Shown here in pieces: positions 8,860 through 64,000 of a stretch of 64,000 bases of DNA. Under the pieces are notes generated by a model. The model ran no database searches, was not told the origin of the DNA, and saw only the letters and a program-made list of their open reading frames with translations. The DNA lies in assembly GCA_002269645.1 (NCBI GenBank), contig NIVC01000900.1:186001-250000 (forward strand), read 5' to 3'. Both the position numbers and the translations under genes were made by a program. Every line of letters begins with the position of its first letter. The first letter of the stretch is position 1. Origin of the DNA: Macrostomum lignano (Eukaryota).

Positions 8860-9930
8860 ATCCGCTCTCTACTTTCCGACCCTCTACCATCCGCTCTCCA
8901 ACAACCACTCTCTACTTTCCGCCCTTCCACCATCCGCTCTCTACTTTCCGCCCTTCCACCATCCGCTCTCCAACAACCACTCTCTACTTTCCGCCCTTCC
9001 ACCATCCGCTCTCTACTTTCCGCCCTTCCACCATCCGCTCTCCAACAACCACTCTCTACTACCCGCTATCCACCATCCGCTCTCTACTATCTGCTCACTA
9101 TACCACCCGCTCTCTACTATCTGCTCTCTATACCATCCGCTCTCTACTATCTGCTCTCTATACCATGCGCTCTCTACTATCTGCTCTCTATACCATCCGC
9201 TCTCTACTATCTGCTCTCTATACCATGCGCTCTCTACTATCTGCTCTCTATACCATCCGCTCTCTACTATCTGCTCTCTATACCATGCGCTCTCTACTAT
9301 CTGCTCTCTATACCATGCGCTCTCTACTATCTGCTCTCTATACCATCCGCTCTCTACTATCTGCTGTCTATACCATCCGCTCTCTACTATCTGCTGTCTA
9401 TACCATCCGCTCTCTACTATCTGCTCTCTATACCATCCGCTCTCTACTATCTGCTCTCTATACCATGCGCTCTCTACTATCTGCTCTCTATACCATCCGC
9501 TCTCTACTATCTGCTCTCTATACCATCCGCTCTCTACTATCTGCTGTCTATACCATCCGCTCTCTATTATCTGCTCTCTATACCATGCGCTCTCTACTAT
9601 CTGCTCTCTATACCATCCGCTCTCTACTATCTGCTCTCTATACCATCCGCTCTCTACTATCTGCTCTCTATACCATCCGCTCTCTACTATCTGCTGTCTA
9701 TACCATCCGCTCTCTATTATCTGCTCTCTATACCATGCGCTCTCTACTATCTGCTCTCTATACCATCCGCTCTCTATTATCTGCTCTCTATACCATGCGC
9801 TCTCTACTATCTGCTCTCTATACCATCCGCTCTCTATTATCTGCTCTCTATACCATGCGCTCTCTACTATCTGCTCTCTATACCATCCGCTCTCTACTAT
9901 CTGCTCTCTTTACCATCCGCTCTCCACAAT
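8860..9930. repeat. 30-nt minisatellite (two 15-nt half-units)
   Basis: Unit CTGCTCTCTATACCATCCGCTCTCTACTAT, preceded by a 29-nt variant block. It is the source of the spurious 421/417/371-aa ORFs. Confidence 0.96.
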
Positions 9931-10549
9931 CCGCTGCTCATCCAGCGGTCCATCAATTTCTGACACAACGCCAACAGGATATCCCGCGAGCTCTCCACCT
10001 CAGCCAACAATCTCAGAATTAAAATTGGAATTCTAAAACAAACATCAAAATAAAAATAACAGCCGGTTCACGGGTGCCAGACTGTCTGTCCCCCATACCT
10101 CTCCTTCCCTCTCCATCAGGAGCCTCTTCAACAAGTTTTGATTTCCAATATCACCGTCAACCCTAACCTTTTCCTCAATCGCTGTTAAGAAAACAAAGGA
10201 ACAATGCCCTGCATTGTTGAGAAGTTGAATTGACTCGACAGTAAAAAGAGCCGAGATAAAAAAATAAGAATAATTGAAAAGCCACTTGACTAGGCTTGAG
10301 TGCAACAGTCTCTTTTCTACCCAATTGTTATCAATCCATTGTGTGCTGCTCTGACGATAATAAGTCTGAGTGTTTTCCCAAACCCAATGATGTCATTCAT
10401 GACAAGTCAGTCAGTCAGGGAGTCGATCCTAGCCATAAAGTTACATCGTTAAGATAAATATTGGAATCACGGGAAAGGCAGCGGTGAGAAAATAATTTAA
10501 ATGTGCCAAAGGGTGATGATAGAATGATGGTAGGATGACCTTTATCTGC

Positions 10550-14716: not shown

Positions 14717-15048
14717 TCAGTCATTCACGCCTCTGCTAACCAACAGATTAACCGGATCAGCCAGCGACTGCAGCCATCGAGCGGTTTCCGAGTGGCTCAA
14801 GCTGCCGAGTCTCCGCCCGTTGGCCTCGACCAGCCGGTCGCCCGGACGCAGTCGGCCAAATGCCGGTCCATCGGGCGACACTCGCGACACAGCGACCCCG
14901 CCGCCTGCTCCGCCACCAATCATACTACTATTAGCAATGCTGAATCCCAGGCCCCCTGTAGATTTCTGCTTCCAATTTTGACGACACAACGACACCCAAA
15001 CCAGTTGGCGACCATTAAGAATAAATTTGGCCCTGTCCAGAGCGTCCA

Positions 15049-15079
<31 letters not shown>

Positions 15080-32476: not shown

Positions 32477-34167
32477 TTATCGGTTCCATTTTTTCCTGTC
32501 GCACCAACGGCCGAATCCCTGAAGCTGAAGGCGATTGAGTTGCCCTTGAACAATTGCAAAGCATTCTAACCATCCCTTGATGAAGTTGTAGTTGGCATTT
32601 GGTCTCACTCCGAATCGTAGGCATTGAAAATTTTCAGCACTGCAGGTGTTGAGATCAAGGTTGTGACTTCGCTTTTTCATTTGAGTCACATTTCCATGCG
32701 CGTACAAGTTGCATTCGGAACTTTGCAGCGCAAAGCCAAGGTTTATTTCAGCAGCCTCATTTAAAGGACTCAAAGAAAACGCACCAGGGCTGCTGACGTA
32801 GTTATAGTAGCCTTCTAAGTTGGGTGGATGGTAACGGAAAACAGCACGGGTGTCTCTGCGTACCAGCATAGCATTGCCAACACGTTGAGCAGTGAAACAT
32901 TTTGTAAACAGATTGCACAGTGTTGCTGAAAAATGAAAATGAAAGAAAACATAAGGCTATAAGTTATGGTGATAGTAGAATTAAGGATTGACATATGCAG
33001 CTATTGAAACTTACTTCTTGTGTAAAAATAGTCTGGCTCGAATGAACAACGTCACGTTGGGCTCGGGCACAAACAGGTCCTCGATTCCGTCGGCCGTGCT
33101 CACACCGATGAAGGAGCCAGACTCTCCCGTCACGAACGCGCCCGCAGACCGGTTGAGCACAGCCGACACGAGCACCGGAGTGTGCGGATTCCGGTGCACA
33201 GGCGCCAAATTGAACGAGCCCACACGGAAGTGGTACAGAATCCGCAGCGAGCTCACCGCGATGCTGCTGGGCAGGTCGGTCGTGTGAGCTGCAATTCGAT
33301 AACGATGTAACGATGTGAGCACACCGGTGCCTGCATGGACTCGCCAGTGAATGAGCTGGGCACAGCTGCAGTCACGCACTGCATGGGCACAGCTGCAGTC
33401 ACTCACTGCATGGGCACAGCTGCAGTCACGCACTGCATGGGCACAGCTGCAGTCGCACACTGCATGGGCAGAGCTGCAGTCACGCACTGCATGGGCACAG
33501 CTGCAGTCACTCACTGCATGGGCACAGCTGCAGTCACACACTGCATGGGCACAGCTGCAGTCACACACTGCATGGGCACAGCTGCAGTCACACACTGCAT
33601 GGGCACAGCTGCAGTCACGCACTGCATAGGCACAGCTGCAGTCACGCACTGCATAGGCACAGCTGCAGTCACGCACTGCATGGGCACAGCTGCAGTCACA
33701 CACTGCATGGGCACAGCTGCAGTCACACACTGCATGGGCACAGCTGCAATGCACACACTCATGCATGCTCAGGCCTGACAGAATGACTTCTCACCCTGCT
33801 CGAACTTTGCCAGCCTCCGCCTGTTCACAAACGAGTCGCACTGGCCGTGTCCGTGCAGCCATGCAGTGAGGAAGGCCTCGGCAGTCGCCAGCAGACACCA
33901 GCGATGCTCAGCGACCATGCTGGCAGCTGCAGAGCTCTCTGTCGTGTGGCAGCTCAGCACGCAGACAGCGATGCTGCGGTCAGGCAGTTGATGAGGCTCC
34001 AGCTTCCACACTCCATCAGTGGGCAGGTCGTCAGGCGGACAGGCGACCAGTCTGTCGTAGTCGGTGAGCCCCACGATGGACGCTGACGAGACGGCGATGA
34101 GGCAGCAGAGGAGCACGAGAGTAAAAACTGTTTTGCGGCTTCTATAGATATCAGTTGGTTTCAGCAT
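32477..34167 (-). pseudogene. PAN/Apple + ConA/LamG-like secreted protein, copy A (apparent frameshift; pseudogene or assembly error)
   Basis: Exons 34167-33795, 33288-33015 and 32925-32477. Signal peptide, Cys-patterned PAN-like domain and ConA/LamG-like C-terminus (FIKGWLECFAIVQGQL). The phase-2 junction frame (NTVQSVYKMFHCS) differs from the frame of the rest of exon 3 (VGNAMLVRR...). One PAN Cys is Ser. Confidence 0.7.
33355..33755. repeat. 27-nt minisatellite in intron 1 of copy A
   Basis: Unit CTGCAGTCACACACTGCATGGGCACAG, about 15 copies. Confidence 0.97.
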
Positions 34168-34788
34168 GTTAGATTTTTACCTGAAACTGACTTGTCGCCT
34201 GAAACCAGCGCTGAAAAACAACTTTAATATCAGCTACTTGTAGGTTGCGACAGATTTTATATATGCCAAATCTTTAAGACTCTGATAGGCTCTATTCCTT
34301 CTCGACTAGTCGTGTAAGCCACTGTGTAATGGACTTCATCAAACCTTCCTTGCCACCAATTGGAGAATAGAAATGCAAGTCAGTTGTTCGTCTTAAAGTG
34401 CATTTAGAAGAATTTAGTTGCATAGATCGGCTTAGTTATCAACTTGACTGATAACTTGATGTGGGAACCTTGATGTGCAAAAGGGACAAAGCCTAATTTT
34501 ATTTGTCTATGGTCGCAAAGTCAGCGTTCGTGGCTGGCTGATTTTCCTCAAGAGTTCAACCATAGACAGCTTGACAGGCAAGCTACAATTGTGTCTCGCG
34601 CAGAAACTTTGTTTTAGTATAGAGACCTATTTTCCCATAGAAATCTAACACACTCCATGATGTTGGCCATAGACAATAGGTTAGCCGGAAATTTCTGTTG
34701 CAGAATCAAGCCTTAAGCGAAACTGACTGACAAATTTGCTAACGGACTAACTTGTTTCTTCGCATCATACCAAGTCAGCAAGTAAAAA

Positions 34789-41294: not shown

Positions 41295-44789
<3,495 letters not shown>

Positions 44790-45473
44790 TGCTACTCAAA
44801 CCGGACCAGTTCGGAACTAAAGCCACGTCAGCTTAATCTTAAAAGCAAGAACTTCTCAACGAGCATTGTTTGAAATAGTCGTCCACTTAAGAAGCATACT
44901 AGTAGAAGTCATTCAGCTATGAATTTCAGCTGCTTGAAACACTGCGCGTTCAGCATTGCCTGCTCTGTAGCCTCTGCATTGAAGTTGCAGAAACTTCTGG
45001 TGACGATTGGGGGCGCAATGTGCAGTTCTGAGCAGTCTGAGTCACTGTGGCCCGATAATTTGCTTGTCGGACTGCTTTGAGAAGAGAATACGCTCTTGCT
45101 GAGGCTACATGGGCAAATACAAAGCCCAAGTATGACCAACCGGCATTGGGCAGAGAGGCGTCGGGTGTTCTGCATGCATTTGCCTCTTTTCCTGTCAATT
45201 GTTAATATTTTAATCAAAATAACAGTAATCTTACTCAGCAAAATCAGTCAAAATCAGTCCTGGGTGGGTAACCAATACCTGAGATTTGTCCACCAATCAG
45301 ATTTTCCGGGTTTACCAATTCCAATGCAAGGGCAATACATTCACCCTATAAGTATCTCCGCAAGTTAAAGCGGTATCGAGTTCTGATGGCCAAGATCGAG
45401 TTCCACTCCCCCTGATGAATTTCAAAAACAATAAACTTTCACAGCTTACTGAATTTTTTTAGCTCTTGCCAGC

Positions 45474-47433
45474 ATGCTAGCTTTGTTGAGCACATTTGGG
45501 CAATTATTGTGCCTCATTGCCATCGCCTCGGCGTCCATCGTGGGGCTCACCGACTACGACAGACTGGTCGCCTGTCCGTCAGACGACCTACCCGCTGATG
45601 GAGTGCGGAAGCTGGAGCTTCATCAACTGCCTGAACGCAGCATCGCTGGCTGCGTGCTGAGCTGCCACACGACAGAGAGCTGTGCAGCTGCCAGCATGGT
45701 CGCTGAGCATCGCTGGTGTCTGCTGGCGACTGCCGAGGCCTTCCTCACTGCATGGCTGCACGGACACGGCCAGTGCGACTCGTTTGTGAACAGGCGGAGG
45801 CTGGCAAAGTTCCAGCAGGGTGAGGAGTCACGAGTGAATGCAGCTGTGCCCATGCAGTGCGTGACTGCAGCTGTGCCCATGCAGTGTGTGACTGCAGCTG
45901 TGCCCATGCAGTGTGTGACTGCAGCTGTGCCCATGCAGTGCGTGACTGCAGCTGTGCCCATGCAGTGTGTGACTGCAGCTGTGCCCATGCAGTGTGTGAC
46001 TGCAGCTGTGCCCATGCAGTGCGTGACTGCAGCTGTGCCCATGCAGTGTGTGACCGCAGTTGTGCCCATGCAGTGCGTAACTGCAGCTGTACCCATGCAG
46101 TGTGTGACTGCAGCTGTACCCATGCAGTGTGTGACTGCAGCTGTACCCAGTTCACTCACTGGCGAGTTCATCCATGCACCGATGTGCTCATATCGTTACA
46201 TCGTTATCGAATTGCAGCTCACACGACCGACCTGCCCAGCAGCATCGCGGTGAGCTCGCTGCGGATTCTGTACCACTTCCGTGTGGGCTCGTTCAACCTG
46301 GCGCCTGTGCACCGGAATCCGCACACTCCGGTGCTCGTGTCGGCTGTGCTCAACCGGTCTGCGGGCGCGTTCGTGACGGGAGAGTCTGGCTCCTTCATCG
46401 GTGTGAGCACGGCCGACGGAATCGAGGACCTGTTTGTGCCCGAGCCCAACGTGACCGTGTTCATGCGAGCTAAGTTCGACTTCAACGGAGAGTGAGTTCC
46501 AAGGAAAGGCATGTTTGAGTGTCATTCTGAACATCCCAGTGAAACTGTGTTTTTTACAAAAAATCTGTAGCTGGGTTTTTGGACAAAAAGGATTCAAGTG
46601 AATTTTCTTATTTGTGTTTCTTATACTTGTTATTGCTGTGCAACTGACTAAGAAACTTGTATATAATTACAGAGAAATTTACAACTACTTTTACTACTTA
46701 TTCAACTGCGAAGACAACGCATATGGTAATTACCTGGCTATGAAAAACGATGAACGGCTCAAGATGAGCTACCAGCAATCGAATTCGACAGCTTACTGGT
46801 ACTACGAATATCTAAGCAAACCAAACAGCTTTCCAACCAGCACCTCGGGCGCCTATCGCGGCTTTGGATTCGTTCTGGATGCAAGCGTCACTGAGGCGAA
46901 GTTTTACAACTCCGCTTCTGGCGGAACCTCAACCGTGGAAGTCGAGGCTTCCACTTCTGATTCCGGAATCAAAGAGGCCAATTTCAATTGCATGAGGTTC
47001 GTCTTTATGCACCAGTAAATCTTCTATCTGTGTAGCTAATTGCAAAGACAGAATGAAAAATCACAGGGCAGTCTTAACCTACACATATATACATGTATAC
47101 AATTAACCATCATAGAGTTTAGTGATTTTGTATCGTATTAACGACATATCTACGAAGGTATTAGGTACGGAAAGGCAAAGGATCCAACTACAAAATGATC
47201 TTGGTTTGTCACATTTAGAACTATTTTTTAAATATTGGATATTATTAATACGGCATTATTATAATCGTAGCACTTTCCAAATTCAACATCCCAGAATCGG
47301 AGTGTTCGAACCGGACGCAATCGGGCGCTGCCTTCGAGGCTTCGTCGAGTGCTTCGCCATCTTCAGCGGTCAGCTCAGTGCCGCCCAGTTCCAGCAGCTG
47401 AACGCCTGGTGCGCCAACAAGAATTCTGCTTGA
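45474..47433 (+). CDS. PAN/Apple + ConA/LamG-like secreted protein, copy B, 360 aa, 4 exons
   Basis: Exons 45474-45819, 46218-46491, 46673-46996 and 47295-47433; GT-AG and phase-consistent. Signal peptide, PAN-like Cys pattern, C-terminus LRGFVECFAIFSGQLSAAQFQQL. Confidence 0.9.
45838..46148. repeat. 27-nt minisatellite in intron 1 of copy B (same family as 33355-33755, inverted)
   Basis: Unit CTGCAGCTGTGCCCATGCAGTGTGTGA, about 11.5 copies. Confidence 0.97.
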
Positions 47434-47917
47434 AGCTGAAGAGGACACGGCAAACGTTTCAAGCTTGAAGTTTATTACCTGCGTTATTGTTGGAACTTTC
47501 ATAAACTAGTCTGAATCGATCTGCGGCATGGCAACAATATGTTTGTTTATCGACTGTTCGCAATTAAAAAACCGGGATTTTTTTGCTTTTTTAATTTTTT
47601 AGCTTAAACCAGCCGGATTTCCTTGTCCTTGCTTTCTGAAAATCAAGAGTTTGGTTCGGAAAAAAATTGAACAAAAATCTAAATCAGTTAGTGATGCATT
47701 GTTAAACTGAATCAAAAATAAAAAAACTGGAGGCGGTCTCTGAGTCAGACAATGGAAAAGAGGCTTTTTCAAATGAAATTTCCGAAAACGGAAGTTCGGA
47801 TGCAGCAGTTCAAAGAAAAACAAAGCGGGAAGCAAAAAAGTTTTTATTGCTGCTTCAACCATTGAATCGGGTTTTGTGATTAAAAAAGTTTAAATTAAAT
47901 GACAAAAGTTTGATTGC

Positions 47918-49126
<1,209 letters not shown>

Positions 49127-49647
49127 AGATAGCGAGAAAGAGCGAGCGAAGCGAGCTCTTTCGAGCTTGCTTGCCGCAGCCAGTCAAGCTGAAAGCACGC
49201 ACACAAGATCACCGGAAACGATTAAGGCAGCTGGAAAGCCAATGGGCGCGGTAAGCGCTTTTATACAGAGGAACTACCTGCTGGAACCAGCCATGCCGAA
49301 CGAAAATCAGACTACTCAAGTAGTGCAAAAGAGTACGTGCAACTACCGAGAAATCTAATTTTCGTAACCGCTCCGGTGCAGGTCCTGGCTATAGATAGAA
49401 GATAGGTACAGCGTATACATTAGCTGACACGAATTTTTTAATTAACATTTATATTGTTGACAATAGAATATATATTTATGCTGATAATATCCTTTTTTGT
49501 CAGTGTAATATATCGTATAATATAGAAAGTGACAGACATTTGTATCAGAGTAGCTCATATTGTTATTCAATTTCAAGTCAAGCTATAAGCAAGGCTTTTA
49601 ATTTTTTTCGAATTTTATTCTGCTATAACAGTACCTAGAAAGTTCCT

Positions 49648-49876
49648 GAGGTTGTAGCCTAGTGGTCAGAGCGTCGGACTTACAACTTGAAGGTGGGGGT
49701 TCGATTCTTGACTCACTCGAAACAATTAGTGTCCTTGAGCAAGACACTTAACTCTGCATTGCTTCAGTTCACCCAGCTGTAAAATGGGTGCCAGCATTAG
49801 CTGGGGTAATTGAGGCTGTGTGTGGCGACCCCACCCCCCCCCCCCAGTCCATGGACTGAACAGCCGAACGCAGCTT
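49648..49876 (+). mobile_element. tRNA-derived CORE-type SINE, copy 1
   Basis: A box TAGCCTAGTGG and B box GGTTCGATTC. The body GTGTCCTTGAGCAAGACACTTAACTCTGCATTGCTTCAGTTCACCCAGCTGTAAAATGGG resembles the MIR/CORE domain. A second copy is at 63527. Confidence 0.88.
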
Positions 49877-50145: not shown

Positions 50146-52089
50146 TCAGCCCATCGAGCAGTAGTCCTGCAGCTGCTGGAACTCCGATCCGGTGAGGCTC
50201 CGACTGCTCATACCGTAGCAGCGGATTGTGCCCTTGAAACTCCAATCATTTCTCAGGCTATAGCCAAGTTTCAGACACCCGAAGCGACCCTCAGGAGCGC
50301 TCCCGATGCTTCCATTTCGCGATGGCTCAGCGTGCGTGATGCTTCCGTTGAAATAAAATTTCACACTTTCGGCATTGGCAGAGAACGCAGAGCCAACTGA
50401 GATCAAACCGATTGAGTCATCGTTAGTAAACACGTTGTAAGCTGACCAACGTTGATACTGGAAATATCCGTTCATCCAATGAAAATAAGCGTACATCGTG
50501 CGACTATTTTTTGCCCAAGTGTTGGACGACTTGGTTCCGTTGCACTGTTGAATCCGGTGGTAGAATTTGTAGCTGAAAGTTTATTAATCAGGGTTTACGG
50601 GGTAAGACACTCAGATAATTTTTTTTTCAAACAGTCTTTACACCATGCAAGTATCCCCCAACTCACCTTCTGTCCAGTCCCCTCCTCACTCCCTGCCCCA
50701 GTCCCCCTCCTAACTCCCTGCCCCAGCCCTCCTCCTCACTCCCTGCACCAGCCCCCTTCCGGCACCAGTCCCCCTTCTCACTCTCTGCACCAGCCCCTCC
50801 CTCCTCACTTCCTGCCCCAGCCCTCCTCCTCACTCCCTGCACCAGCCCCCTTCCGGCACCAGTCCCCCTTCTCACTCTCTGCACCAGCCCCTCCCTCCTC
50901 ACTTCCTGCACCAGCCCCTCCTCACTCCCTGCCCCAGTCCCCCTCCTTACTTCCTGCACCAGCCCCCCTCCTCACTCCCTGCCCCATTCCCCCTCCTCAC
51001 TTCCTGCCCCAGCCCCCTCCTCACTCCCTGCACCAGCCTGCCTCCTCATTCCCTGCCCAGGCCCCCTAGTCCTTATTCTCTGCTCTGCTTATCTATATCA
51101 CTTTATCTCTTTCCTAATTGATCTCTAACTAATTAAACGATAGTTAAGATAGCGTTGAAATATTGTCTCACCCGCTCGTCATGTTATGCCTAGCTAGCAT
51201 GTAGAATGAATAATTTCTATTAAAGTCCAAATCGTGCTCAAGGCCAGGCGTCTTAGCAATCAGATAGGAGTCGTTGTGCCCCATCAGCTGGGCACCGTCG
51301 GTCCCAAGGTTCACGTTGCGAGCGGTGAGGCAATACTGCCTTGGATTCACCTCGTTCAGTAAGCCGCTGTGCGTGAATCGGTAAAACAATTTCATCTGCA
51401 GCTGGCTTAGTAGACCAGCGCGTTCTGAAATTATTCAAGAGGAATGCGTTGCGACAGCGACTCTATACGTGGGGGAAGTGTAGAGTCGAAGGATCGTCTG
51501 AGTTTCTTTTGCTGACCAAGAAGCGAAATCAAATCTTGTACAAGTTGGGTCTTCTTCGTCTTTGAATTGACTGCTCACAAACAACGGATAGACAAGTTTC
51601 TGAGCATCTTCTCACACAAATTGGCTTGCTGAAACAAGCACTCTCTGAATTTTTTATGTGAATCAAAAATATCGATGGGGCCAAGCGTGCACGAGTCAGT
51701 GTCGCTTCTTACGCAACAAAAAGAGCCCTTCTTGGCAGATTCACTCGTGCTAGCCACTTACTAGAAGCACCCGTATGCTGATAAGTGTCGCAGCTTCCAG
51801 ACGTCCATTGTTCCTCTGTCGAGCAGGAGTCGCCAGTGTAGCACAGCCGAGTGCCCGGATCAAAGTGGAAGGCGTCACAAAGCGGCTGCAGGCTGCAGTG
51901 CACCGAGCACTCAGCATTGCCGCTAACATTGGACGCCGCAATCACTGCAGCGTCGGTGGGGCAGAGCGAAGTGCGTTGGAATGTCAGACTGTCCGTTTGG
52001 AAGCCGAGAGCAGAAGACAGCTGGCACCAGCATGTCATTAGCATGGCAATCAGTAGACATAGCTTCGAAATTCGCGTGCAGTGGCACAT
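50146..52089 (-). CDS. PAN/Apple + ConA/LamG-like secreted protein, copy C, 335 aa, 3 exons
   Basis: Exons 52089-51762, 51424-51172 and 50572-50146, phase-consistent. Signal peptide, PAN (ECSVHCSLQPLCDAFHFDPGTRLCY), C-terminus FKGTIRCYGMSSRSLTGSEFQQL. Intron phases match copies A and B. Confidence 0.9.
50660..51065. repeat. C-rich degenerate minisatellite in intron 2 of copy C
   Basis: Recurrent CCTCCTCACTCCCTGCACCAGCCC motifs. Confidence 0.9.
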
Positions 52090-52369
52090 TTTCTAAAAAT
52101 TGTTGAGACAAAATGTTGACAAGATGGATTGGGAGTCCGCTTTAGCTCCATCATATTTTATCAGCACTGAGATTCCTACATGTGGGGAAATGTACGGGCG
52201 ATTCTATTGGCTCTTCGTCAAGTTGCCATTGGCTACGGAAGCTGCCTAATAAACCCCCACTTCATCCTAGTGTATTTCCTGTGTTTACTCTCAGATAATA
52301 CTGCTGAAGTTGCTTTCTCCGAGGAAATCAAATTTGCTCGGGAGTATCTGCTTCTACTGACATCGCGGC

Positions 52370-53970
52370 TATGATATGATATGACAGGCCTAAAAATCTA
52401 CATGAACTTGACTTACCTGACTTTGCTGCAGGGTGCTCCAGGCATCTGAATGCAGCGGGAGGCATTGAAGCCGAGTTCGCCTTAACCCTGGCGACGACGG
52501 GCAGCTGGTGCTGCGGTATAGCGCAGGGAGATCCGGTGGTGCCGGTGTCCGCAGCGCAGTCCCCCTCCGGGAGAGTCCAGAGGTAGATGGTCGCTCGCCC
52601 AAAAGCCCTCAGGTATCGGACGAGCAGCGAGCTGGCAAAAATGCTCGAGTCTGAAAACGTCGGAAAGGTCAGGAGTTGGGCGAGGTAGGTGAGCCTGTCC
52701 TTAGTAAATGTGGGGTATTCACAAATTAGATGAGAATGCTGAGAATGCTTTGCATTCTCAGAATCTAAGGGGATCTACCTTAGGAACACCTTGTTAGAGG
52801 CGCCTAAGCGGTTGAGCTGCCCGATACAGTCGAGGACTGTACGCGAGCAGGTGTTGGTTCGTTCAAGAGGGTGGATCGCCGCTTGACTGTCCAAGTGGGA
52901 GAGTAATCTCCTCCCGCAAGACTCGCAGATTGTAAAGCTTCATGGAGCAGGAGCTGATTGCGAGAACTTCATTCTGGAAGACGGTAGAGCAAGTGCCAGT
53001 GTGCTGGGAGAAGGTCGCCACGGTTCTCCCTCCAGAGTGGTGGAATGCTGGTTTTCAATTCAAGCAGAGGGCGGAGCTTGAACAGGATTCTGTCCAAAAG
53101 GGTCAGAAGGCCCTCCCGTAGCTTCTAGGTCTCTCAGGTTGAGGTCGCCGTGCGGCCGGAGGTTCCGTTTTCTGAAGGGGAACTGCTTCTGGGTGAGAAC
53201 ACCCGCGTCACGCAGTCTTTAGTCACAGACAAAGAAGTCCAGGGGCCGGGGAAGGTCCATGAAGGAGTTCACGCCAGCGAATGGCGTAGAGGGAGTCGCG
53301 CTCATGATGCCATGCGGCTTTAACTTACACCCTGTTGAGAGCATCAAGAACCCCTTTTACCTCTAGGGCACTGTTCGGGGTTGAGGCCCAGGTAGCGTCG
53401 AAAGCTCTGCGGATCTGCGCGAGAGTCGCGAGAGCTTTGCGGACTTTGATTTGGACGTGCGGGGTCCAGCTCAACCTGTGGTTGAGGGTGACGCCCAGAC
53501 ATCTGGTTTGTTTCTTCATGGTAACAGATTTGCCACAGAGAAAATCATCCAATTTCGGTGGCTGGTCTTCGGTGGTGAACACGGTGGTCACGGTTTTAGA
53601 CTCAGAGCTTAAGGCCGCAGCTGTGTGCCCAGCGCTTAGCACGGTGAATGAAGGCTTGGAAGAGGTCTCTTAGGACCACGGGTGATGTTCCAGCCACACT
53701 AGCGGTATAACATCATCCACATAGCCGATGTACCGGGTCCGGATATGGGCTGCTGAGTCATTAGTTTATGACCAAGTTCCAGAGAATCTGGCTAAGGACT
53801 CCACCTTTCTGAAGCTCCACAGAGCGGGACTGTCCGAGGAGATACTGGGATCAGGTGGCAGTCTGAAGTATCTGACGTGTAAATTTCGCCTTTGTTGACT
53901 CGCCGGGGAAGAATTTCCCGTTGGAGTTCCCCTTCAGCGTTCTCTCCAGCAGTCACTGCAGCCCAAAAAG
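52370..53970 (-). mobile_element. 5'-truncated, decayed non-LTR retrotransposon with RT and RNase H (LOA/R1/I-group-like)
   Basis: Broken minus-strand frames give GTPQ.EIL (~53920), YIGYVDD (~53720), CLGVTLNHRLSWTPHV, RNase H TVFQNEVLAI...DSQAAI...LNRLG, HLICEYP, and a (TCATA)n 3' tail at ~52375. Confidence 0.9.
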
Positions 53971-56339
53971 TTGATGAAAAAGTGGCATCTTTAATAGCCG
54001 TTCAACGATGCCGATTTATGAGCTAGGAAAGCTTTCAGTAGTGAAGAATTAACCTAAGCTTTTTAGCTCTTTTGTTTTTCGCACAGTTTCCCGGGGCTTT
54101 TGAAATATTGATTGAATGAAGCAGAATCGCCGGTTTTCTCTTTACAATGAATTTCTTTTTTGATTGAATCGATCGAGTTGGCTTCCCGTAAGCAATTTGT
54201 CTCTTAGTCTCTCGCACATTTTACGAGCGTAGATCGCAACACTTTTTTCAGGCTCCAAAGTCAGTCATCAATGTAAAAAGAATGCGCGGAGTGCGTCCTA
54301 AAAACGAAGTTTTTTACGGAAATTCAACGCAAAAAGCTGTACCGGAAGAATAGAATATAGAATAGATAGATGAGCTCCATTCTGTAGGACATCTAAAGTT
54401 TAAGCAAAAAAACTCGGAGCTGCAACTGCCTTCCGCTTGCAGAATGCTTCTTTTCCTAACATAATGAGCTTCAAACTACTTGCTGGGAGACATGGAGAGA
54501 GACGGCTGAAGCGTGAAAGCGTGAACACGCAATCGGGCACACGCAAAGGCGGCCAAAGCGGGTCGTAACGTTGACCTCCGCCTTGTCAATTTTGAGAAGA
54601 ACCCTATAGCTATCGTTTAGTCGCTAAATCTTTTTAAGCTCGTGGGTTTTCTTCAGTTTCACACATTTGCGATGCAGACATTCACGCGAAAATTACACAC
54701 TTTCAAAGACATTTACCACACGCAGTATTAATAAAACTTTAAAGGATGTTTAAGCAAATCATCCCACAAGTTACTTAAGCAAATTACTCAAAACCTTTGG
54801 AAATCATTTTGAATGGTACTAAAATTATATACGCGCTCCACATTAAAAACAGGACGAGAGCCTCATCTGCGGGCGGTCCCAGTTACAACACAATCCTTAT
54901 TTTTTATCTGGATTCAGGATTAAGTTGCTTGAGTTATGAACTCGTTAACACCTAAACAAAAGTGGACGGCAATGCTGATCTGTTTGTTGAGAAATCAGCA
55001 AGCGAAAGATAACTATACTCAGCAACATTAAAAAGTCGCCACCCGGTGCCCCAGTGAGCAGTGTCTTTCGACCAGTGTCTATCACCTGGCCAACCATTTT
55101 GATATAAAAAATGCTTGCAGAAACAATGAAAACCGGGTGAAGCTATTCAATCCATCCAATCTTCGTTCTCCGCTCTTCCCAATCCCTCCTCACCCAGCCC
55201 AACTCTGCGTCGCGTCGTGTGGCGCAAGTTGCGTCACTCAAAAGTCAATACTGAGCTACAATTCACTGCGCACTCTCAAAGGTGGCGACTTCTTAATGTT
55301 GTTGAGTATAGATGAATGTAGACTCAATTTAATCCAAATAATGACAAAATCGATGGGGATTATTTAAGAGCTGGAAAAGGTACATGTCATGGGTTTCGGC
55401 CTTTTCGGCCCCTTTCGGAAAGCCTTCGCGCCTCAGGTCTCAGAAATAAATCAATTAGAGTCCTGGCCCCCCACTCCTGTCAGATGGTCAGCCCCATGGT
55501 AGCTTGATCGTGTGGCGAGCAGTCTAGGTCCATAGCGCCTAAGAGAGGGACAGCGAGAGACAAGCACGGAGAATTTTGAAGGTAGAGATCAGCTAATCCG
55601 CAGATCAACTAACCCGCTGCCACCAGCCCGTGTGTCCTGGCTCACCAAACCAGAACTTTCGAAATCGGGCTTCCGACTAGAGGGGGCTTTGCACTTACCT
55701 GCCAACTAGTGTCTTTTTCTGTCAATCTCGAAGTCATAGCCGATGATAAGGGACACTGCTGGGACTAGATCGCATTGGCCATGCAGGTACAGAGGGGACT
55801 TGTGCAGGGGATTCTTGCAGTGGCGAGCCTATGGGGTAGCTACATGTACTATTACATTGCTTAATACGAAAATATGTACTTTTGGCATTCAACGCGCCAA
55901 CTAGCCTCTCATAGCCCTGATGATAGACTAACTCGAACATCGGAGACCGCATGATTCATTACCCGAGCCGCTTGGCGGACCTAGAGTGCACAGAAGTACA
56001 TCTCTGGCGCCGATTCTGCACTATTGGCAATTTTGCTCACTGATTTGATAGATTGATCGACTGAGAACTGCCTTGCCATTGGTCCACTGTGACCGGCGCC
56101 TACTAGCTTAGCTACTCATCTGAGCCATCGGCGAACAAAAAAATAAAACCGCGGATAAAAATAACTGTCAGATTTAACCTTCTCATTGAATCACTTCACA
56201 CCTCAGATTAAATTGGAGCTTCAGACTACTAGCAGTATTATTGAATGATTTCTGCCTCAGTACAGCACAGTACAGCTTTTGTTCAGTACAGCACTACTGA
56301 ACAAAATGAGCAAAAGTGTGCGCCTAATCCAGCTACTGA

Positions 56340-57730
56340 AATAGGGGACAGGTAAGGAATCACCCGATCAAGCAAGTCTAGGTAGCCTCTCACCCAACAA
56401 ATCAGAAACTCATCAGCCGGAGACCAGGTAATCCACAGTGACCGAATCGGCTTAGTGCTTCGCAGCTGGAGGCCCGGGATGATGCTGATGTCACAATCTT
56501 CGCAGATAGCTAGCAGGTGATGTTCTTAATCTTGATGTTCGCTGCTGACGACCAGGTGGATTCGTCCTTGATGGTGATGAGGGGAGTCGCGATCCGGGGA
56601 TCAAGAGACGACGGTCGGGCTCCGGAAGGTCTAAGTTAGGCCAAAGTCCCAGGAGGCGGAGCAGGCGGTTGAGTCCGAGCGGGCCAAAAACACCGGTTTA
56701 AATAGCCGCCAACTGGACTGCAATTTGTTATAATGGAACACCTCGACGCTGATTGGCTGAGCCGATTTGTTATAACGCACGTCGAATTTTCTGTTCGGCT
56801 GAGCTTCTTGCCACCCAAACTCACGTGACCAGAAGATCCTATCAGTTCCCTCGGGGCCATAAAAATACGACAGGTGCGGTCATAAATCACTCAAAATCAA
56901 TGATTTATGACCCAAAAGCCGCACCTATGTTATTATAACTACTGGTATGGCAAAATCATATAACTAGTATGAATTCTAGGAAAATTACATAAAGAGAAGA
57001 AAAAAGGCCCATAGCCTGTTGTTAGTATAGTAGGCTAGTAAGTTTGAAGCCCATGTGCGAGCGTGAAGTTTGGAAAAAGTGCGTCCTCATCACATGTAAG
57101 CAAGGCAGGGATCGAGTAGCCAGGGAAGAAAAAAATCGAAGAAATAAAATGCTCTTGTCTTTTGAAATATTGTACAACAACAGCAGCAAAAAACTTTGTC
57201 AATTAGGGTTTTTAGAAGGCTGCAGCATCATAGCGCGCGCCTCTGGGCCAGGTCGCGAATGCAGGCCACGCGGCCGACCGAATCCGAGGCGCCGGCGCCA
57301 GCAGGCAGATAACGAAATGCCCAGTGCGGACGACAGGACTGCCCTCACAGAACGAAAGGTAGCCGAGTCAATACCGCGGCGATGCCGCAGATCCTCGCGG
57401 ACGCCGGGAACCAGACCGTCGAGGCAGATGAACTTAGACTGGCAACGCGCACAGAAGCCCCCATCGCCTAGCCTGCAATTTTGTGCCGAGGTGCAAGATA
57501 GACAGTCATATTACATGTATATGTGTCATATTACATGTCGTTCGGCAAGCAGAGGCAGCAGAGCATGACTGGGGTCCAACAACCAGGCCGACATTGATCG
57601 CCGCAACAGCAACCAGCTTTTTATTCGTCGCTGGGTGCGCTCTCGAGGCGAAGATCGTCGGCTTAGGACGTCAAGTACGCTGATCGCGGGCCTCTTCGGT
57701 TGTCGGCGACCCAGAAAGCCGCAGAAAGTC
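56340..57730. promoter_or_regulatory. CpG-rich island, candidate (bidirectional) promoter of the Smad gene
   Basis: CpG-dense compared with its flanks, CCAAT box CTGATTGGC at ~56750, and candidate first exons diverging on both sides. Confidence 0.45.
57317..57358 (+). CDS. candidate first coding exon of the Smad gene (MPSADDRTALTERK)
   Basis: ATG inside the CpG island and a phase-0 donor AAG|gtagcc that matches the phase-0 acceptor at 62760. There is no homology support. Confidence 0.42.
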
Positions 57731-60700
57731 TTCGTTTGTAGGAAGAGAGAATTATTCACACCACAAAGTCAAGCACAAGAACAAAAAATTAAAAGTATCC
57801 TGAACTTGAACCCCTTGAATCTCTGCCATTGAGTAAAGAACTATATAGGTACATGTGTACGTTACATGTATACTACCGCGGTAGATCTGATCTTCCGCAA
57901 ACATTTCACAGAAAACAATGCATTAGCTTTTTTATCGAATTTCAAGCGTCTACAGCCATCAGCCTTACTCAGAGGGTCAGCCGACCACCTTACTCCCATA
58001 TTCACCATTAGTCTGAATAAAACACTTTCCTCTGTGTTCACTTCTGTCCTGAACTCTGTTTGTTGCCTGGTCTCTTGTCTTTTGAAAAAAATTAAATGCT
58101 CTCGTAGCTACAAGAAATTTCAAAAGTTTACAAACAAAAAAGACAGAATTATTTTATGTGGAATTTTTGCTAGCTACTACACGAGCTAAAAGTCCTGTAA
58201 TTCGGTTGCAAAGTTATGCTTTCCACAATAAGCCATCTGTAACGTTTTGTTAGTTAGAAGTAAGTTTAATCCTTATATTTAAATTCAATTTTTTAGACCT
58301 TAACTTTGCGCAAGTTCATTTAGCATTTTTTGATAAATACCAAATGTTGGTTTGTTGAAATCGAATAATTTCCAAGAAATTTTATTCATATTTGAACATG
58401 TAACTTAAAGTATTTTTGCTTAATTAGCTACTACTTTAATTACTACTGCTTTAATTACTTTGTGTAACCTCCGACCATGCGGGCCGGTCTTGGTTGAAGG
58501 ATCAGCCTTCATACGAATGCGACATCGTTATGTGTAATATTAAAAAATGACATTTCCTGCAGCATAACCTTAGCAACCTTTGCTAAGTAAATATATGCTA
58601 TTGCCATGGGCATAATCAATTCCAAAGAGAAAGTAGTAGTTTAAACTTTAAAGCAACTAAAATGTAACTGTGTAGTGTAGTTAGTAGAAGCAATCACTCC
58701 AATCTACAATGTAATTCAATCAGTGATTGTAGTCACATAAATGGCTTAATTGACAGTAAAAATAGGCCTTTACTCATTAGTAGTAGAACTCTTATGAGGG
58801 TAGGCCTATTAAAATCAGTGAAACTTTTAATTTAAAAATTATGAACTTAGTTTGCTAAACAAAAAAGAACATTATGATACTATCTGAACTGAATGCTGAC
58901 TGTCTTAACTGAATGTCTGACTGTCTAAATATATTATATTTGCATTAACTTTGCATTAAAAAGTTAAACTATAGTTTGATAGTTAAAATAGACCTAGGTT
59001 TATTATAATATGCAGTCTAGATATTCATAACAAGTCATAAATATTTTCTTTGTCTATGATATGACTATCATAGACAATAAATACCAGCTCAGTTTCTTAA
59101 AGCAAATAATAAATTTGGCATCATTTTCAAATAAAGTACATTTAACAGAGAAAAATGTTGGCTTTAGACCTAATCTAGATTTTTAAGTTTAATAATTTTT
59201 GTTTAAAATAATTTTTTAACTTAAATGTTTCTAATTCTGTTTTATTATCATAATTTAAGCCTAATATACCTATAGTAAAGGCATTTATTCTGTTTATGAC
59301 TAGGCCTAGGCCTATACCAGGTTGCGGATAGCCACCCAGCCACCCTAAGTGGATGAACAAAACAGCCACCCTAAGTTTTTACTCCTTGGCATACACAATC
59401 AGCGTACACAGCCCTTAGCAAACACTATTGATAATGGTATACACAAGTAACACAGCCACGTATACTTTTTTGGCGTATAAATTTTGGTAAATAAATTCAT
59501 GCCATGCATGAAAATTGTAATATAAATTAAGGTTTTTATGTAAGGTAATGGAAAATTCGTATTGTCAGTAAAAAAAATTTTGCTTCTTTGAAATTAACAA
59601 TAAATAAAATTAGTGTAAATTTTTGCTAAAAGTATCAATTTTTTTGCATCCCTTTTGGAATAAGTTTCAAAAACCTGTGCACGTGACATGGGTAGGGACT
59701 TCAGTGAGTTATAAGAAGTGCGTGCCAATGGCAAAAAAGTAAGAAAAAAGTTCAATTTTTCAAGGGCGATTTTAAAGAAACTATAGAAGCCAGGATGAAA
59801 GTAAAATATGCATTTAAAAGGTAAAAAGGAGCTCTTTCAAATGACACCAACTGCAAGTCTAGCTTTGTTATACTTTTTGCACTGTCTATTTTTAAAGTTG
59901 ACCATTTTTTAGGAGGAATATAAAATTGAAGCCAAAATGAATAAAAAAACAGTGGTTCAGAAAATGCTTTTTCTTAGCTGCAATGTGTTTCTTATAATGG
60001 AAACAAAGGTTTTATAGTGTAAAGGGATAATTTAGAAACATTTTTCTGGTGTTAAAAAAATTTTTTTTTCTTTTAATGCCCATATGGCTCTATGCAAAAT
60101 TTCAAATCCAAAATTTTCCATGAAATCCTTTTCCTGCATTGTTTCTCTTTATATTTTTCATTACCTATTGACAATACAAGCACAGTAAAAAAACCGCTTG
60201 CCAATAGCTATAGGCGCAAAAATTTTGTGGAGGTTTCTTTTTTTAATACGTTTACATGTAAAATACCCATTGAAACGTGTATTTCGTGTTTTTTGTGAGA
60301 CTCTGCCTTCCGGCAAACTAGTTCTCTGTGTCATTTAACTAATTCTGCTATGCTGAACACGATAGGCAAAACCGTTTTTTAATAAACCCATGCGCAAAGC
60401 CTGTACAGCACATTACATTGCAGTTGGGGTGTCTGTCATGCATTAAAAATTTAGGGCAAGAAGTAGAATAGTATTATAGTAGGTAAAAACCTGAACAAAA
60501 TGACACTAGCCTTGTATAAATTAAGCAAGCAGAACAGATGCTATTGTATTTTTAAAATTGCAATCATTGCGTATCTGGTTAAAATAGTCAAAATTTCATA
60601 CACCCATCCTGTTTCAATTAGCTTAGCAACTTGGGCATATAAAATAATATTAAAATATATAATTCATACAATTAACACTAAAAAACTGAACAAAATGACA

Positions 60701-62759
60701 CCAAGCACAGTCATTTTGGTTGGCTAGAAAATTAATTACAAGTGTTCAAAGACAAAAAGCCAACTTTTTGGCCAAAAATGATCACAAACCGTAATGTAAA
60801 AATTCCATTGGCTAAAGGCACAAATCGGGGTTACTAAAATAGCTGTAGTTTCCTTATTACTCAACCAAATCACTAAAGTTTGGCCATTTTGGAAATGGGA
60901 AAGTAAGATCTATCTAGTGAAATAGCAGCCTATAACAATTTCTGAAATTTAATTTTCTCACTGAAGTGCCTAACATGGGTGTCAAAATTGTGCCCTCAAA
61001 AGCGCAACGCAACACCAATGTCTGTTGACTGAATGACCAGGGGTAGAGGACGCCATAGCAGCCATGTTATAATTGACAATTCCCATTCTGGCATTAACTC
61101 CAGACATCGAGACCATGGGGCGAGGAACGAAAGTATTCCTTTCAATTTTGCGGAAAAAGAAGTAAAATTTAAAAACAATAAACAGTAAAACAACAAAGGT
61201 ACAACACTTGGAAAAATAGCGCATGCATTGTAACTAACAAGTAACATTTCTAAAAATTATATTTGAAGTATTAGTTATTTTACCATCAAAAAAAAGAACA
61301 ATTCAAGAACTAGTTATTATCAAACATGTTTGAAACATTTAAATACCAAGAAACAACCATGAACATATTACAATGAAACACAGTTTATAAGGTTTTGGCT
61401 ACAGATCCAGGCCACAATGCGTCACATGACGACGCCAGCCACCAAGTTGCCATACTGTTGCATCATGTGATGCAACACATGACGACACCAGGTTTCCACA
61501 GTTTCGCGCAACGTGATATACCACTTGACACCACTGTCGTGCGACGTGACACTAGGAGAATCCAAAAATGCGACAGACGGTCATCCACGTTTTGTCAACT
61601 TATTCCAATAGGGTTTTGCATTATATTATTTGTAGGTAATAATATTTTCATCATAGTGCTTTTCATAATATTTTAAAAACACATCATACAAAAGCCTTTC
61701 TTAGAAAACTCTACTTGTGAAAAACCATATTACCTTTTAAGAATTTTTGGTGTACATTGGCATACAAAGTCCTTGATGCCCAAATTTGGTCTAGCGTACA
61801 CGGATACATGATCCGCACACTAGGGCCTATAGAGAATATTTTGCTTCTATAGGCCATAGATAGGAAAATGGCATATATGCTAAAAATTTCTAGGTTAGGC
61901 CTTATACTTTAAAAATTGGCATACATATTAGGGTGTAAAACCAACATGGCCACATAACAAGATGGCCATAGCTGGGATAGGGTTCATAGAAAATGACAAC
62001 TGGTTTTATTATTTTATAGTGAGATGGGGGTGGAGAAAGAAAAATAAAATTTGAAGTTAGGTTTTCTTCAAAACCAGTCAGCGTTGCATTTGCACAAGTA
62101 AATCTAGAAAATCATGCAGACAAATCACAATTGATATAGTATACTATATCAATCTTCAATAGCCCCTCTGTTAATTTAACAACAGATAGTATAATTCTTT
62201 ACCTCATATAGCTCTTTATAACCTATAATTTCCTTTTTAAACTAAGACTAAAACAAGCTTTCCTTGAAGTTTGCTTCTAGAAGACTAAAGACAAAAAATT
62301 AATGTATCAAAAGATTTTAAGTATCTACCACTGAATTCATTTTTGAAAAGATATAACAAATAAAATTAAGTGACAAAAAGAAATAACTAAGAAAAATGAT
62401 AAGATTGGAATGGAATCATTGTGGAATGGAATAAAAAAGGTATAGATTAGAGCAATGTTAAATCTTTGCTCAATAGTCAAACTTTCAAGCCATAGACTCA
62501 AGGCAGCAGTTGTCTTGAGTATAGCACTCTGCCACTCTGAATTAACTCAATTGCTCATAAACTCAAACTGACTTCATAAAGCTGTGTTATATTATGATTT
62601 TTTTGTTGAAATTACTTATTACAAAACAAGTTGAAACCCATTTCACAATCAAGTTTTTTTTTTCAATTCTCAATGTATATTTGTCTGAGATCTTACACTA
62701 AGTATGAGTTAGCTTTGATTTATTGGCACTCAATCGATTTATTGCTGCTTGATTTCCAG

Positions 62760-64000
62760 CTGGTCCCAGAGAAGCAGCAACGCCAGGCAGTTGCAAGCTT
62801 GCTGCACTGGCTGGCCAGCTGCTATCAGCTTGATGAGGCAACTCTGACTGAAACAGCTGGTCAGCTCTCCAGTCTGTCAGATGGTCAGCTTCGCGACCTG
62901 TTAGCTGCAGCGACTGCTGCTAATGAAGTCTGTTTGGACTCTGTGCCACCATCCATACCCACCAGTTCATGCTGCATTCCACTGCCTATCAATCTTAAAC
63001 CGCGACTGCTGGTTTGTCGCCTGCGTAGATGGACAGATTTGGATGACAATTCAGAGGAACTGTTACGAGTTTGTCGATGCAGTGTAGAAAATGGGAATGC
63101 CAATGGTAACTCTTCAAGCGAGCCTGCTACTGAGAGTAGTAGCGTAGGTGCTGGATTTGATGTCTTTTGTTGGTAAGTTGAGTATCAACTTACCAAGAAT
63201 ATCAAGAATAGCCCATGCCCATGCTATGTTTTGGCCGTCTCAAAAGTTTACCCAAGTAGCCTATTTAGCTTTGTACTAACCGCGGCCATCTCTGCTTAAC
63301 TTTTGCCCAAATCAGGTTTCATCAGGAAGATTGTAAAGTCTATGAAAGTACTGTATATTTGCAAGTTTTTTAGAGCATATCCTAATCATACTACTTTTGT
63401 GGCCCATGCAGTCAGTAGTCTGGGTGGTTTCGTTTGAATCATGGTGTCATTTGGTATCCCAGGCCTAAAACCTCAGTGTTAAAATGAAGTTTGGTGGATA
63501 TCAGTGCCATATTTCGAGCTCCAATGGGGGTTGTAGTCTTAGTGGTGAGAGCGTCGGACTCCCGGCTGAAAGGTCGGGGGTTCGATTCCCGATCCCTGTC
63601 CAAACAATTTGTGTCCTTGAGCAAGACACTTAACTCTGCATTGCTTCAGTTCACCCAGCTGTAAAATGGGTGCCAGCATCAGCTGGGGTAATTGAGGGTG
63701 TGTGGCGACCCCCCCCCCCAGTTCTTGGACTGAACAGCCGTACGCAGCCTTTTCATTTTCGCTAAGGCAGGTAATACGGCATATTGGCAGTAGTATAGTG
63801 TGCGTTGAACAGTAGTGAATTTATTTTTTCCAATCAACTGCACTGCAGCGCCAATCCCATGCACTACACTCGCCGGGTCTGGTGCACGGCTTTCTATTAC
63901 GAACTGGATAATCGGGTTGGCGATGCCTTCAAGGCGAGCGAGCCCTGCCTGCGCATTGACGGCGGCGGTGGCGGCAGCTTTGATCGGGTCGGTCGCCGAA
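62760..64000 (+). CDS. smad: divergent Smad protein (MH1 exon 62760-63172; MH1 end plus MH2 start exon 63849 to beyond the window); subclass unassigned
   Basis: MH1 reads EKQQRQAVASLL...CIPLP...LLVCRLRRWTDL...VCRC...VFC|CANPMHY. MH2 starts WCTAFYYELDNRVGDAFKASEPCLRIDG. The phase-2 junction tg|gtaagt ... ctgcag|c is consistent. Confidence 0.92.
63527..63749 (+). mobile_element. tRNA-derived CORE-type SINE, copy 2 (Smad intron)
   Basis: A box TAGTCTTAGTGG and B box GGTTCGATTCC; the body is near-identical to 49730-49876. Confidence 0.88.

Follow-up and report, generated by a model that had tools for sequence, protein, structure and literature searches.

A Smad gene of the flatworm Macrostomum lignano predicted to join a hairpin-less MH1-like domain directly to an R-Smad-type MH2 domain

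In receptor-regulated Smads (R-Smads), the linker between the MH1 and MH2 domains is the hub where MAPK, CDK8/9, GSK3 and the Smurf and Nedd4L ligases tune the protein, and the β-hairpin of MH1 is the element that reads DNA. Full-length vertebrate Smad2, in which the exon 3 insert disrupts the MH1 hairpin region, does not bind DNA and works via partners, and EmSmadA and EmSmadC of Echinococcus and DAF-14 of C. elegans are without an MH1 domain altogether. The two Echinococcus proteins are activin/TGF-β-type R-Smads (AR-Smads) that are phosphorylated by TGF-β type I receptors (PMC10073696). The gene described here lies at the end of a 64,000-nucleotide stretch of Macrostomum lignano DNA (assembly GCA_002269645.1, contig NIVC01000900.1, positions 186,001 to 250,000 of the forward strand), which is referred to below as the window and whose numbering is used for all coordinates; the gene model was read directly from the letters of the plus strand. 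The comparisons confirm the predicted product as a Smad in which an MH1-like domain lacking the β-hairpin is joined without a linker to an MH2 domain of the R-Smad type.

Set beside the activin/TGF-β R-Smads, namely Smad2/3 and two further Smad2/3-like paralogues of M. lignano (P0090, on NIVC01001450.1 of the assembly, and P0083), the predicted protein shares an MH2 domain that is 47-50% identical and that carries WCxxxYYELxxRVG, RFCL, VFVQSPN and GWHPATVC(K/R)(I/V)PP, as well as an MH1 scaffold with candidate zinc ligands and, as in the M. lignano paralogue, an intron just ahead of CxNPxHY. It differs from them in a linker of 4 residues instead of about 85-105, lacking both SP/TP kinase sites and PPxY, in the deletion of the hairpin, in the loss of the KKLKK patch (a reading that depends on the alignment), in two MH1 inserts, and in having diverged about twice as far as the M. 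lignano paralogue. With the inhibitory Smads (I-Smads) Smad6, Smad7 and Drosophila Dad it has in common that the N-domain is degenerate, lacks the DNA-binding hairpin and shows Cys doublets near the zinc site, and it would also share their role as pathway antagonists if it were a decoy, but the I-Smad MH2 is a class of its own (30-35% identity) and the window gene appears to be derived from an R-Smad rather than from the Smad6/7 lineage. EmSmadA, EmSmadC and DAF-14 resemble it in having an R-Smad-type MH2 and no DNA binding via an MH1 hairpin, and they are receptor substrates, but they have a low-complexity N-terminus and no MH1, whereas the window gene fuses an MH1 remnant bearing the zinc site to MH2. 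Full-length Smad2, unlike the window gene, keeps the hairpin residues and the full linker, and is disrupted by insertion rather than by deletion.

The divergent MH1-like domain is encoded for the most part by exon A (62760-63172, plus strand; 137 codons plus 2 nt), placed by direct reading, Pfam and MAFFT and bounded by the acceptor tgatttccag/CTG at 62760 and the donor TGT TG/GTAAGT, the exon's last base being 63172. Along this exon follow the helix-1-like AVASLLHWLAS, SSCCIPLP with the first zinc-ligand Cys, INLK, LLVCRLRRWTDL, and RVCRC with the second Cys, and the 3′ part is a Ser-rich insert finishing in FDVFC. The intron (63173-63848, plus strand; 676 nt) opens with GTAAGT and closes with a polypyrimidine stretch and CAG, a T-rich tract lying ahead of the CAG. 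The split codon TG/C encodes Cys, and the spliced product reads ...RVCRCSVENGNANGNSSSEPATESSSVGAGFDVFC-C-ANPMHYTRRVWCTAFYYELDNRVGDAFKASEPCLRIDGGGGGSFDRVGRR. The 5′ end of exon B (63849-63879, plus strand) supplies the C-terminal MH1 motif (C)ANPMHYTRRV, comparable to CVNPYHYQRV and to CVNPQHYTRL of the paralogue, with the third zinc-ligand Cys in the split codon and the zinc-ligand His. The same exon continues (63880-64000, plus strand) into the MH2 start WCTAFYYELDNRVGDAFKASEPCLRIDGGGGGSFDRVGRR and extends beyond the window end. A public protein of 263 aa, P0001, is an alternative model of the same locus that reaches about 100 residues past the window and carries the MH2 on for about 70 more residues, as far as GWHPATVCRVPP.

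The junction itself is encoded by uninterrupted DNA in a single exon, with NPMHY at 63853-63867, TRRV at 63868-63879 and WCTAFYYE at 63880-63903, and the end of MH1 is separated from the start of MH2 by the four residues TRRV alone. Elsewhere, 42-576 aa separate the NPMHY-type motif from WC in the 35 Smads compared that have both motifs, and several of the short-spacing Smads among these are mis-spliced models. No linker-like open reading frame (ORF) was found in the 676-nt intron, either in the ORF list or by tblastn of the window, and a canonical Pro/Ser-rich linker with kinase sites and PPxY is missing from the gene. An earlier note on this DNA had claimed a junction of just TRRV between CANPMHY and WCTAFYYE within one exon, and with it the loss of the MAPK/CDK/GSK3 sites and the PPxY motif; the contiguous DNA at 63853-63903 bears out the junction and upholds this structural reading. 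An assembly deletion between NPMHY and WC, which the note had put forward as one of the findings that would overturn its claim, is unlikely because the source of P0001, an independent model, has the same junction DNA.

Human SMAD2, used as the query, finds exon B in a tblastn search of the 64-kb window at E=5e-7, well above chance. The Pfam MH2 profile (PF03166) scores 23.7 bits across just 32 residues within the window and 84 bits (E=2e-23, profile positions 2-109 of 174) when the exon model is extended with P0001, the visible MH2 being the N-terminal 60% of the domain; by PDB sequence the closest solved relatives are the MH2 domains of Smad2/3. The Pfam MH1 profile (PF03165) matches the in-window product at 25.7 bits, against a cut-off of 25, over positions 54-101 of 103, and leaves the N-terminal half of MH1 unrecognised.

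A MAFFT alignment of the window product with 11 MH1 domains places the β-hairpin SLDGRLQVSHRKGL (aligned as SLDGRLQVSHRKG-L) opposite a mere INLK at 62988-62999. The DNA-contacting hairpin (S)LDGRLQVSHRKG, which reads GTCT/GC motifs, is represented by a gap of 11-14 residues, and INLK alone stands between CIPLP and PRLLVCRL. The alignment also shows two inserts, one of 12 aa ahead of the first zinc-ligand Cys and one (NGNANGNSSSEPATESSSVGAG) of about 18 aa that separates the second Cys from the third, and it matches C71/72, C105/107, C137/138 and H143 to the four ligands (Cys, Cys, Cys and His), making these residues candidate ligands. The replacement of the hairpin by INLK and the retention of C, C, C and H as zinc ligands, both proposed in the earlier note, agree with this alignment, the latter in the sense that the residues stand at the aligned positions. 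The proposed change of the basic helix KKLKK to HWLAS (62805-62819) stands in part: it is plausible when AVASLLHWLAS is compared with AVKSLVKKLKK, but hinges on how the sequences are aligned, and MAFFT set helix 1 elsewhere. The MH1 part is 26-30% identical to each Smad class, and its Cys doublets and LLVCRLRRWTDL recall I-Smads.

The class of the MH2 domain was judged over 110 visible residues, 41 from the window and the remainder from P0001. The blastp scores fall from 103 bits for SMAD2 and 90.5 for SMAD1 to 61 for SMAD4, 41 for SMAD7 and 37 for SMAD6, and global identity follows the same course, from 50.5% with the M. lignano paralogue P0090 and 49.5% with SMAD2 through 45% (SMAD1) and 41% (SMAD4) to 35% (SMAD7) and 30% (SMAD6). 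The core motifs YYELxxRVG, RFCL, VFVQSPN and GWHPATVC are present with exact canonical spacing, the R-Smad signature VFVQSPN...GWHPATVC(R)VPP is found, and with it the GWHPATVCKIPP-type strand that marks the R-Smad class. The Co-Smad class fits poorly (41% identity, 61 bits), with YYE and VFVQSPN..GWHPATVC standing in place of YFE...VFVQSYYLDREAGR of Smad4, and the I-Smad MH2 fits less well again (30-35% identity and 37-41 bits to SMAD6/7). A neighbour-joining tree of 105 columns holds the window gene apart from Smad6/7 at 94% bootstrap and so speaks against an I-Smad placement; the view of the earlier note that the MH2 start is R-Smad-like and not I-Smad-like is sustained, at 50% identity to SMAD2 against 35% to SMAD7. 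States common to the window gene and the Macrostomum paralogues include RVGDA, DGG and VCR(I/V)PP.

The splice model presented here differs from the one underlying the public protein. Threaded on the window, P0001 ends exon A at 63105, using the alternative donor G/GTAACT (63105-63106, plus strand) at a position homologous to the donor of the paralogue, and shares the acceptor of exon B; translating 63848-63907 in the +2 frame gives its residues 116-135 exactly (APIPCTTLAGSGARLSITNW). With each AG dinucleotide from 63790 to 63848 taken as a possible acceptor, neither donor 63105 nor the GT of equal phase at 63148 leads to a productive frame, the reading being out of frame or running into TAG, whereas donor 63172 is in frame with the acceptor at 63848 and with two weak AGs (63812 and 63815). 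Splicing 63172 to 63849 rebuilds DVFCCANPMHYTRRV, to be compared with the canonical DEVCVNPYHYQRV, and the Pfam scores exceed those of the P0001 splice, at 25.1 instead of 17.8 bits for MH1 and 84 instead of 69 bits for MH2. We accept the 63172/63849 model as the probable one because the motif is reconstituted and both Pfam scores rise.

The M. lignano paralogue P0090, itself 70.5% identical to human SMAD2 over MH2, offers a view of how the junction may have arisen. Its exon 1 ends ...TARTQ/GTGAGC and its exon 2 opens with cag/ACC GAG CTG TGC GTG AAC CCG (TELCVNPQHYTRLP), and exon 2 alone spans the MH1 end, the entire linker (about 85-100 aa, ...PSVYMSEDNDG...) and the MH2 start (...SVHYTEPEHWCSVHYYEL...GRVGDAYHASSQFITVDGG...RFCLG). 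The intron in this gene sits immediately before TELCVNPQHY and there is none ahead of the MH2 leader; HYTR is common to the MH1 ends of P0090 and the window gene. Since all three elements share one exon in the paralogue, an in-frame deletion of about 85-100 codons inside that exon is the most economical account, and the probable one, of how the window gene came to lose its linker. The final 36-50 nt of the intron, read in frame, give ..EFIFSNQLHCS/ANPMHY, similar to TELCV-NPQHY of the paralogue, and this segment looks like the relic of an older exon start. Because ..QLHCS resembles TELCV and donor 63105 lies at the donor position of the paralogue, the comparison suggests that both splice sites have shifted and that the Ser-rich MH1 insert may be exonised intron.

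Reading the conserved MH2 start of P0090 exon 2 (1361-1888 of the NIVC01001450.1 stretch) requires three frame changes, and indels in M. lignano assemblies are often technical errors, because even this conserved paralogue needs them. The annotated P0090 protein is partly out of frame, probably through assembly indels. The P0090 hairpin region (ASQLRLLRATGAG) has also diverged, at normal length.

Among 1.84 billion representative proteins searched with P0001 as query, no orthologue was found; there were 394 matches, with vertebrate Smad2/3 at the top and the best non-self match at 91 bits and 41-47% identity. The highest-identity match, P0041, which comes from a metagenome contig, was considered as a linker-less relative and rejected, having a normal linker (PSAYFSEDNADS). 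A Smad2/3-like gene with a normal linker occurs at 4252-5291 of the metagenome contig ctg141326l (ENA ERZ25070786), of animal origin, where it adjoins a reverse-transcriptase ORF; it has IDGG and VCRIPP like the Macrostomum Smads and may come from another flatworm. In the searched literature, no description of a natural linker-less Smad was found, and the only Macrostomum Smad encountered there was a smad4-like in situ probe.

The explanation that we favour, with somewhat better than even confidence, is that the gene is a lineage-restricted, fast-evolving and constrained paralogue of an activin/TGF-β-type R-Smad of the Smad2/3 class. An in-frame deletion inside the shared exon would have taken out the whole linker and left NPMHY-TRRV-WC, and MH1 would separately have lost the DNA-contacting β-hairpin and the basic helix-1 patch while keeping the residues at the four zinc-ligand positions, with the protein under purifying selection now or until recently. 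The coding frame in the window comprises 188 codons without a stop or frameshift; in a neutral simulation, limited to substitutions and started from the window coding sequence, a frame of this length stayed free of stops in 0.85% of runs at 50% amino acid divergence and in 5.6% at 30%. An open frame at such divergence therefore argues for past purifying selection.

A number of observations weigh against this explanation. The MH1 score sits at the Pfam threshold and the MH1 part fits no single Smad class, and in the neighbour-joining tree the pairing of the window gene with the M. lignano paralogue has 38% bootstrap, the tree not separating an AR-Smad from a BMP-type R-Smad placement. P0001 is the sole protein matching the locus in the protein search; it uses donor 63105 and regains the MH2 frame through one additional residue, which calls for a base inserted after 63907 (TGGAATAAT, where the window has TGGATAAT at 63905-63912), and the extra A of its source would place a TAA directly after YYEL. 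The window has no such base, and its YYEL-xx-RVG spacing is exactly canonical. Past VCRVPP, the P0001 tail (PPAAACACSPTSSSSSTC...) is patterned like the +1 frame (PAAICVFSLTLTSARSC) of PPGCNLCVFSNADFGS in the paralogue (GCNLCVFS..), a sign that the frame may break again in the P0001 source just past the window. The window ends ahead of the L3 loop, the SSxS motif and the stop codon, P0001 is out of frame after VCRVPP, and receptor coupling through L3 and SSxS is purely inferred. Finally, HMMER aligns npmhytr-rvwc with the Smad2 leader qpvtysepafwc, and NPMHYTRRV resembles QPVxYxEPxxWC.

Of the competing explanations, the one that survives best is a decaying duplicate of a M. lignano Smad2/3-like gene, either a pseudogene or a segregating null allele, in which the deletions would reflect lost constraint and the open frame would be a remnant; we regard it as unlikely, yet as a serious contender. 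The window gene has the longest terminal branch in the neighbour-joining tree (0.33 against a median of 0.13), its MH2 shares just 50% identity with a paralogue far closer to SMAD2, its MH1 is barely detectable, the search for orthologues returned none, and one protein alone matched the locus, P0001, the only other public copy, which implies one or two frame breaks. The frame breaks lose some of their force, however, since they also occur in exon 2 of the conserved paralogue P0090, where indels are often technical, and decay accords poorly with an open frame of 188 codons that fewer than 1% of neutral runs retain at 50% divergence, with the canonical splice sites, and with the survival of the residues at the four zinc-ligand positions and of the core MH2 motifs at canonical spacing.

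That the fusion is an artefact of the gene model is improbable. On that account exon B would simply be the first exon of an ordinary MH2, leader (xPVxYxEPxxWC) included, and would either be translated from an internal ATG (the M of NPMHY, 63859) as an MH2-only Smad, comparable to the Smads of flatworms and nematodes that have no MH1, or be joined to exon A via the out-of-frame donor 63105. The resemblance of NPMHYTRRV to the Smad2 leader speaks for it, as do the fragment P0115, which shows QPVHYSEPKCWC, the vertebrate Smad2/3 MH2 exon, which begins DLQPVTY at a similar distance from WC (P0003, P0007 and P0013), and the use of donor 63105 by P0001. In M. lignano, however, the intron of the paralogue precedes TELCVNPQHY and not the MH2 leader, and the ambiguity over the leader is settled because the intron in this lineage precedes the MH1 end motif and because HYTR is shared with the paralogue. 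Moreover, the 63172/63848 junction gives D-V-F-C-C-A-N-P-M-H-Y-T-R-R-V for comparison with D-E-V-C-V-N-P-Y-H-Y-Q-R-V, with six motif residues and both zinc ligands matching, the MH1 score climbs with donor 63172, donor 63105 yields no productive frame in the window, and even on the artefact account no linker is encoded between the exons.

The least probable proposal, that the gene is the inhibitory Smad of the flatworm (a Smad6/7/Dad orthologue), draws on an N-domain without the hairpin, on paired Cys residues where the ligands lie (SSCC, CRC and FCCANP, compared with CCC...VCCNPHH of Smad7 and VCCNPYHF of Smad6) and on the resemblance of LLVCRLRRWTDL to LLLCKVFRWPDL, but it is rejected on the MH2, which shares 50% identity with SMAD2 but just 35% with SMAD7 and 30% with SMAD6, carries the R-Smad signature VFVQSPN..GWHPATVC and falls outside the Smad6/7 pair at 94% bootstrap, and it also runs against the fact that I-Smads keep a linker with PPxY. 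In I-Smads this PPxY recruits Smurf.

Returning to a constrained R-Smad paralogue, a protein of this architecture would be unable to contact DNA via MH1 and would be immune to linker phosphorylation and to PPxY-dependent ubiquitin ligases, and any activity would have to run through the contacts of MH2 with the type I receptor, Co-Smad and cofactors. If L3 loop and SSxS are preserved in the C-terminal half, MH2 would engage type I receptors and Co-Smad, and the outcome would be either a DNA-blind co-transducer leaning on the DNA binding of its partners or a competitor for receptor and Co-Smad. The role of inhibitor or decoy, suggested in the earlier note, would be one option and not the default, because DNA-blind R-Smads elsewhere are genuine transducers. 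We give little weight to the more specific proposal that the gene encodes an R-Smad-derived antagonist, its MH1 and MH2 locked to each other without linker, hairpin or handles for kinases and ubiquitin ligases, that docks on activin/TGF-β type I receptors, Co-Smad or both and titrates them.

Upstream of exon A, a GC- and CpG-rich block about 5 kb away (57200-57750, plus strand) is tentatively inferred as a possible promoter or first exon; it holds an ATG at 57318 and MPSADDRTALTERK/GTAGCC in phase 0, a candidate gene start, and a second candidate is the in-frame ATG at 62674, within AT-rich sequence. A match resembling an MH2 start, FWCTLAYKVLDAQ (61733-61897, aligned over 61745-61801, plus strand), about 1 kb 5′ of exon A, was set aside, having E=0.15-0.83 and a stop inside, and is probably a chance match or possibly a relic exon. 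The Smad intron contains a copy (63612-63634) of a dispersed repeat resembling a short interspersed element, with the core TGTCCTTGAGCAAGACACTTAAC, of which further copies lie at 19490-19512 and 49730-49752; the intron copy (about 63500-63700) has a tRNA-B-box-like GGTTCGATTCCCG ahead of the core. No tRNA or Rfam family was detected in the window by ARAGORN and Rfam.

Elsewhere in the window, positions 25118-51609 are collinear with 159516-184567 of NIVC01000346.1 (GCA_002269645.1) at 92-98.5% identity with many indels, and the window may therefore come from another assembly, haplotype or homeologue of that genome. A concatenated multi-exon query gave a window protein 99% identical to BOX15_Mlig001073g2 of M. 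lignano. The segment 837-1619 (plus strand) is presumably the post-homeodomain part of an Iroquois (Irx)-like gene, with MTWAPRNR, an acidic stretch and an Iro-box-like motif; Pfam gave no match on this exon. On the minus strand, 14717-18025 carries exons with leucine-rich repeats (LRR_8, 54 bits) and a PDZ exon (37 bits) with a proline-rich SVPPSPNHQ repeat between them, suggesting an LRR-and-PDZ (LAP-like) gene. An inverted duplication at 33000-34200 (minus) and 45470-46500 (plus), 91-94% identical, holds the start of a secreted-protein gene and a CAVTHCMGTAAV / CSCAHAVCD minisatellite, and this gene belongs to an M. lignano family annotated as 'EGF-like domain-containing' (P0154-P0156). A trinucleotide run of about 430 nt at 42460-42900 (poly-V, poly-T or poly-Y by frame) adjoins an EF-hand exon (DSDGDGRLTVEELADF) belonging to an EF-hand gene (339 aa) that is annotated in the collinear contig, and a PAN-domain ORF lies at 51709-52089. 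Between the PAN and Smad genes, a GC-rich block at 52300-57000 (for example 53325-53642, minus strand) contains the decayed reverse-transcriptase tail of a non-LTR retrotransposon (LGVTLNHRLSWTPHVQ). Long minisatellites and microsatellites at 8750-10040, 41470-42100, 47890-49210 and other places (SIYL, about 1.3 kb; PEAPA, about 0.5 kb) give rise to spurious long ORFs in several frames.

If the gene is a decaying duplicate, it is ordinary. If it were an antagonist, inhibitory Smads would have arisen twice, on the second occasion out of an R-Smad and within a lineage of flatworms. A naturally selected R-Smad without linker and hairpin would be a ready-made separation-of-function allele and would reveal what an MH2 domain with a rigidly attached MH1 remnant still does. 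As M. lignano is a free-living macrostomorph flatworm open to RNA interference and transgenesis, the gene is testable there, and it adds to the remodelled Smads of flatworms and nematodes, among them the MH1-less AR-Smads.

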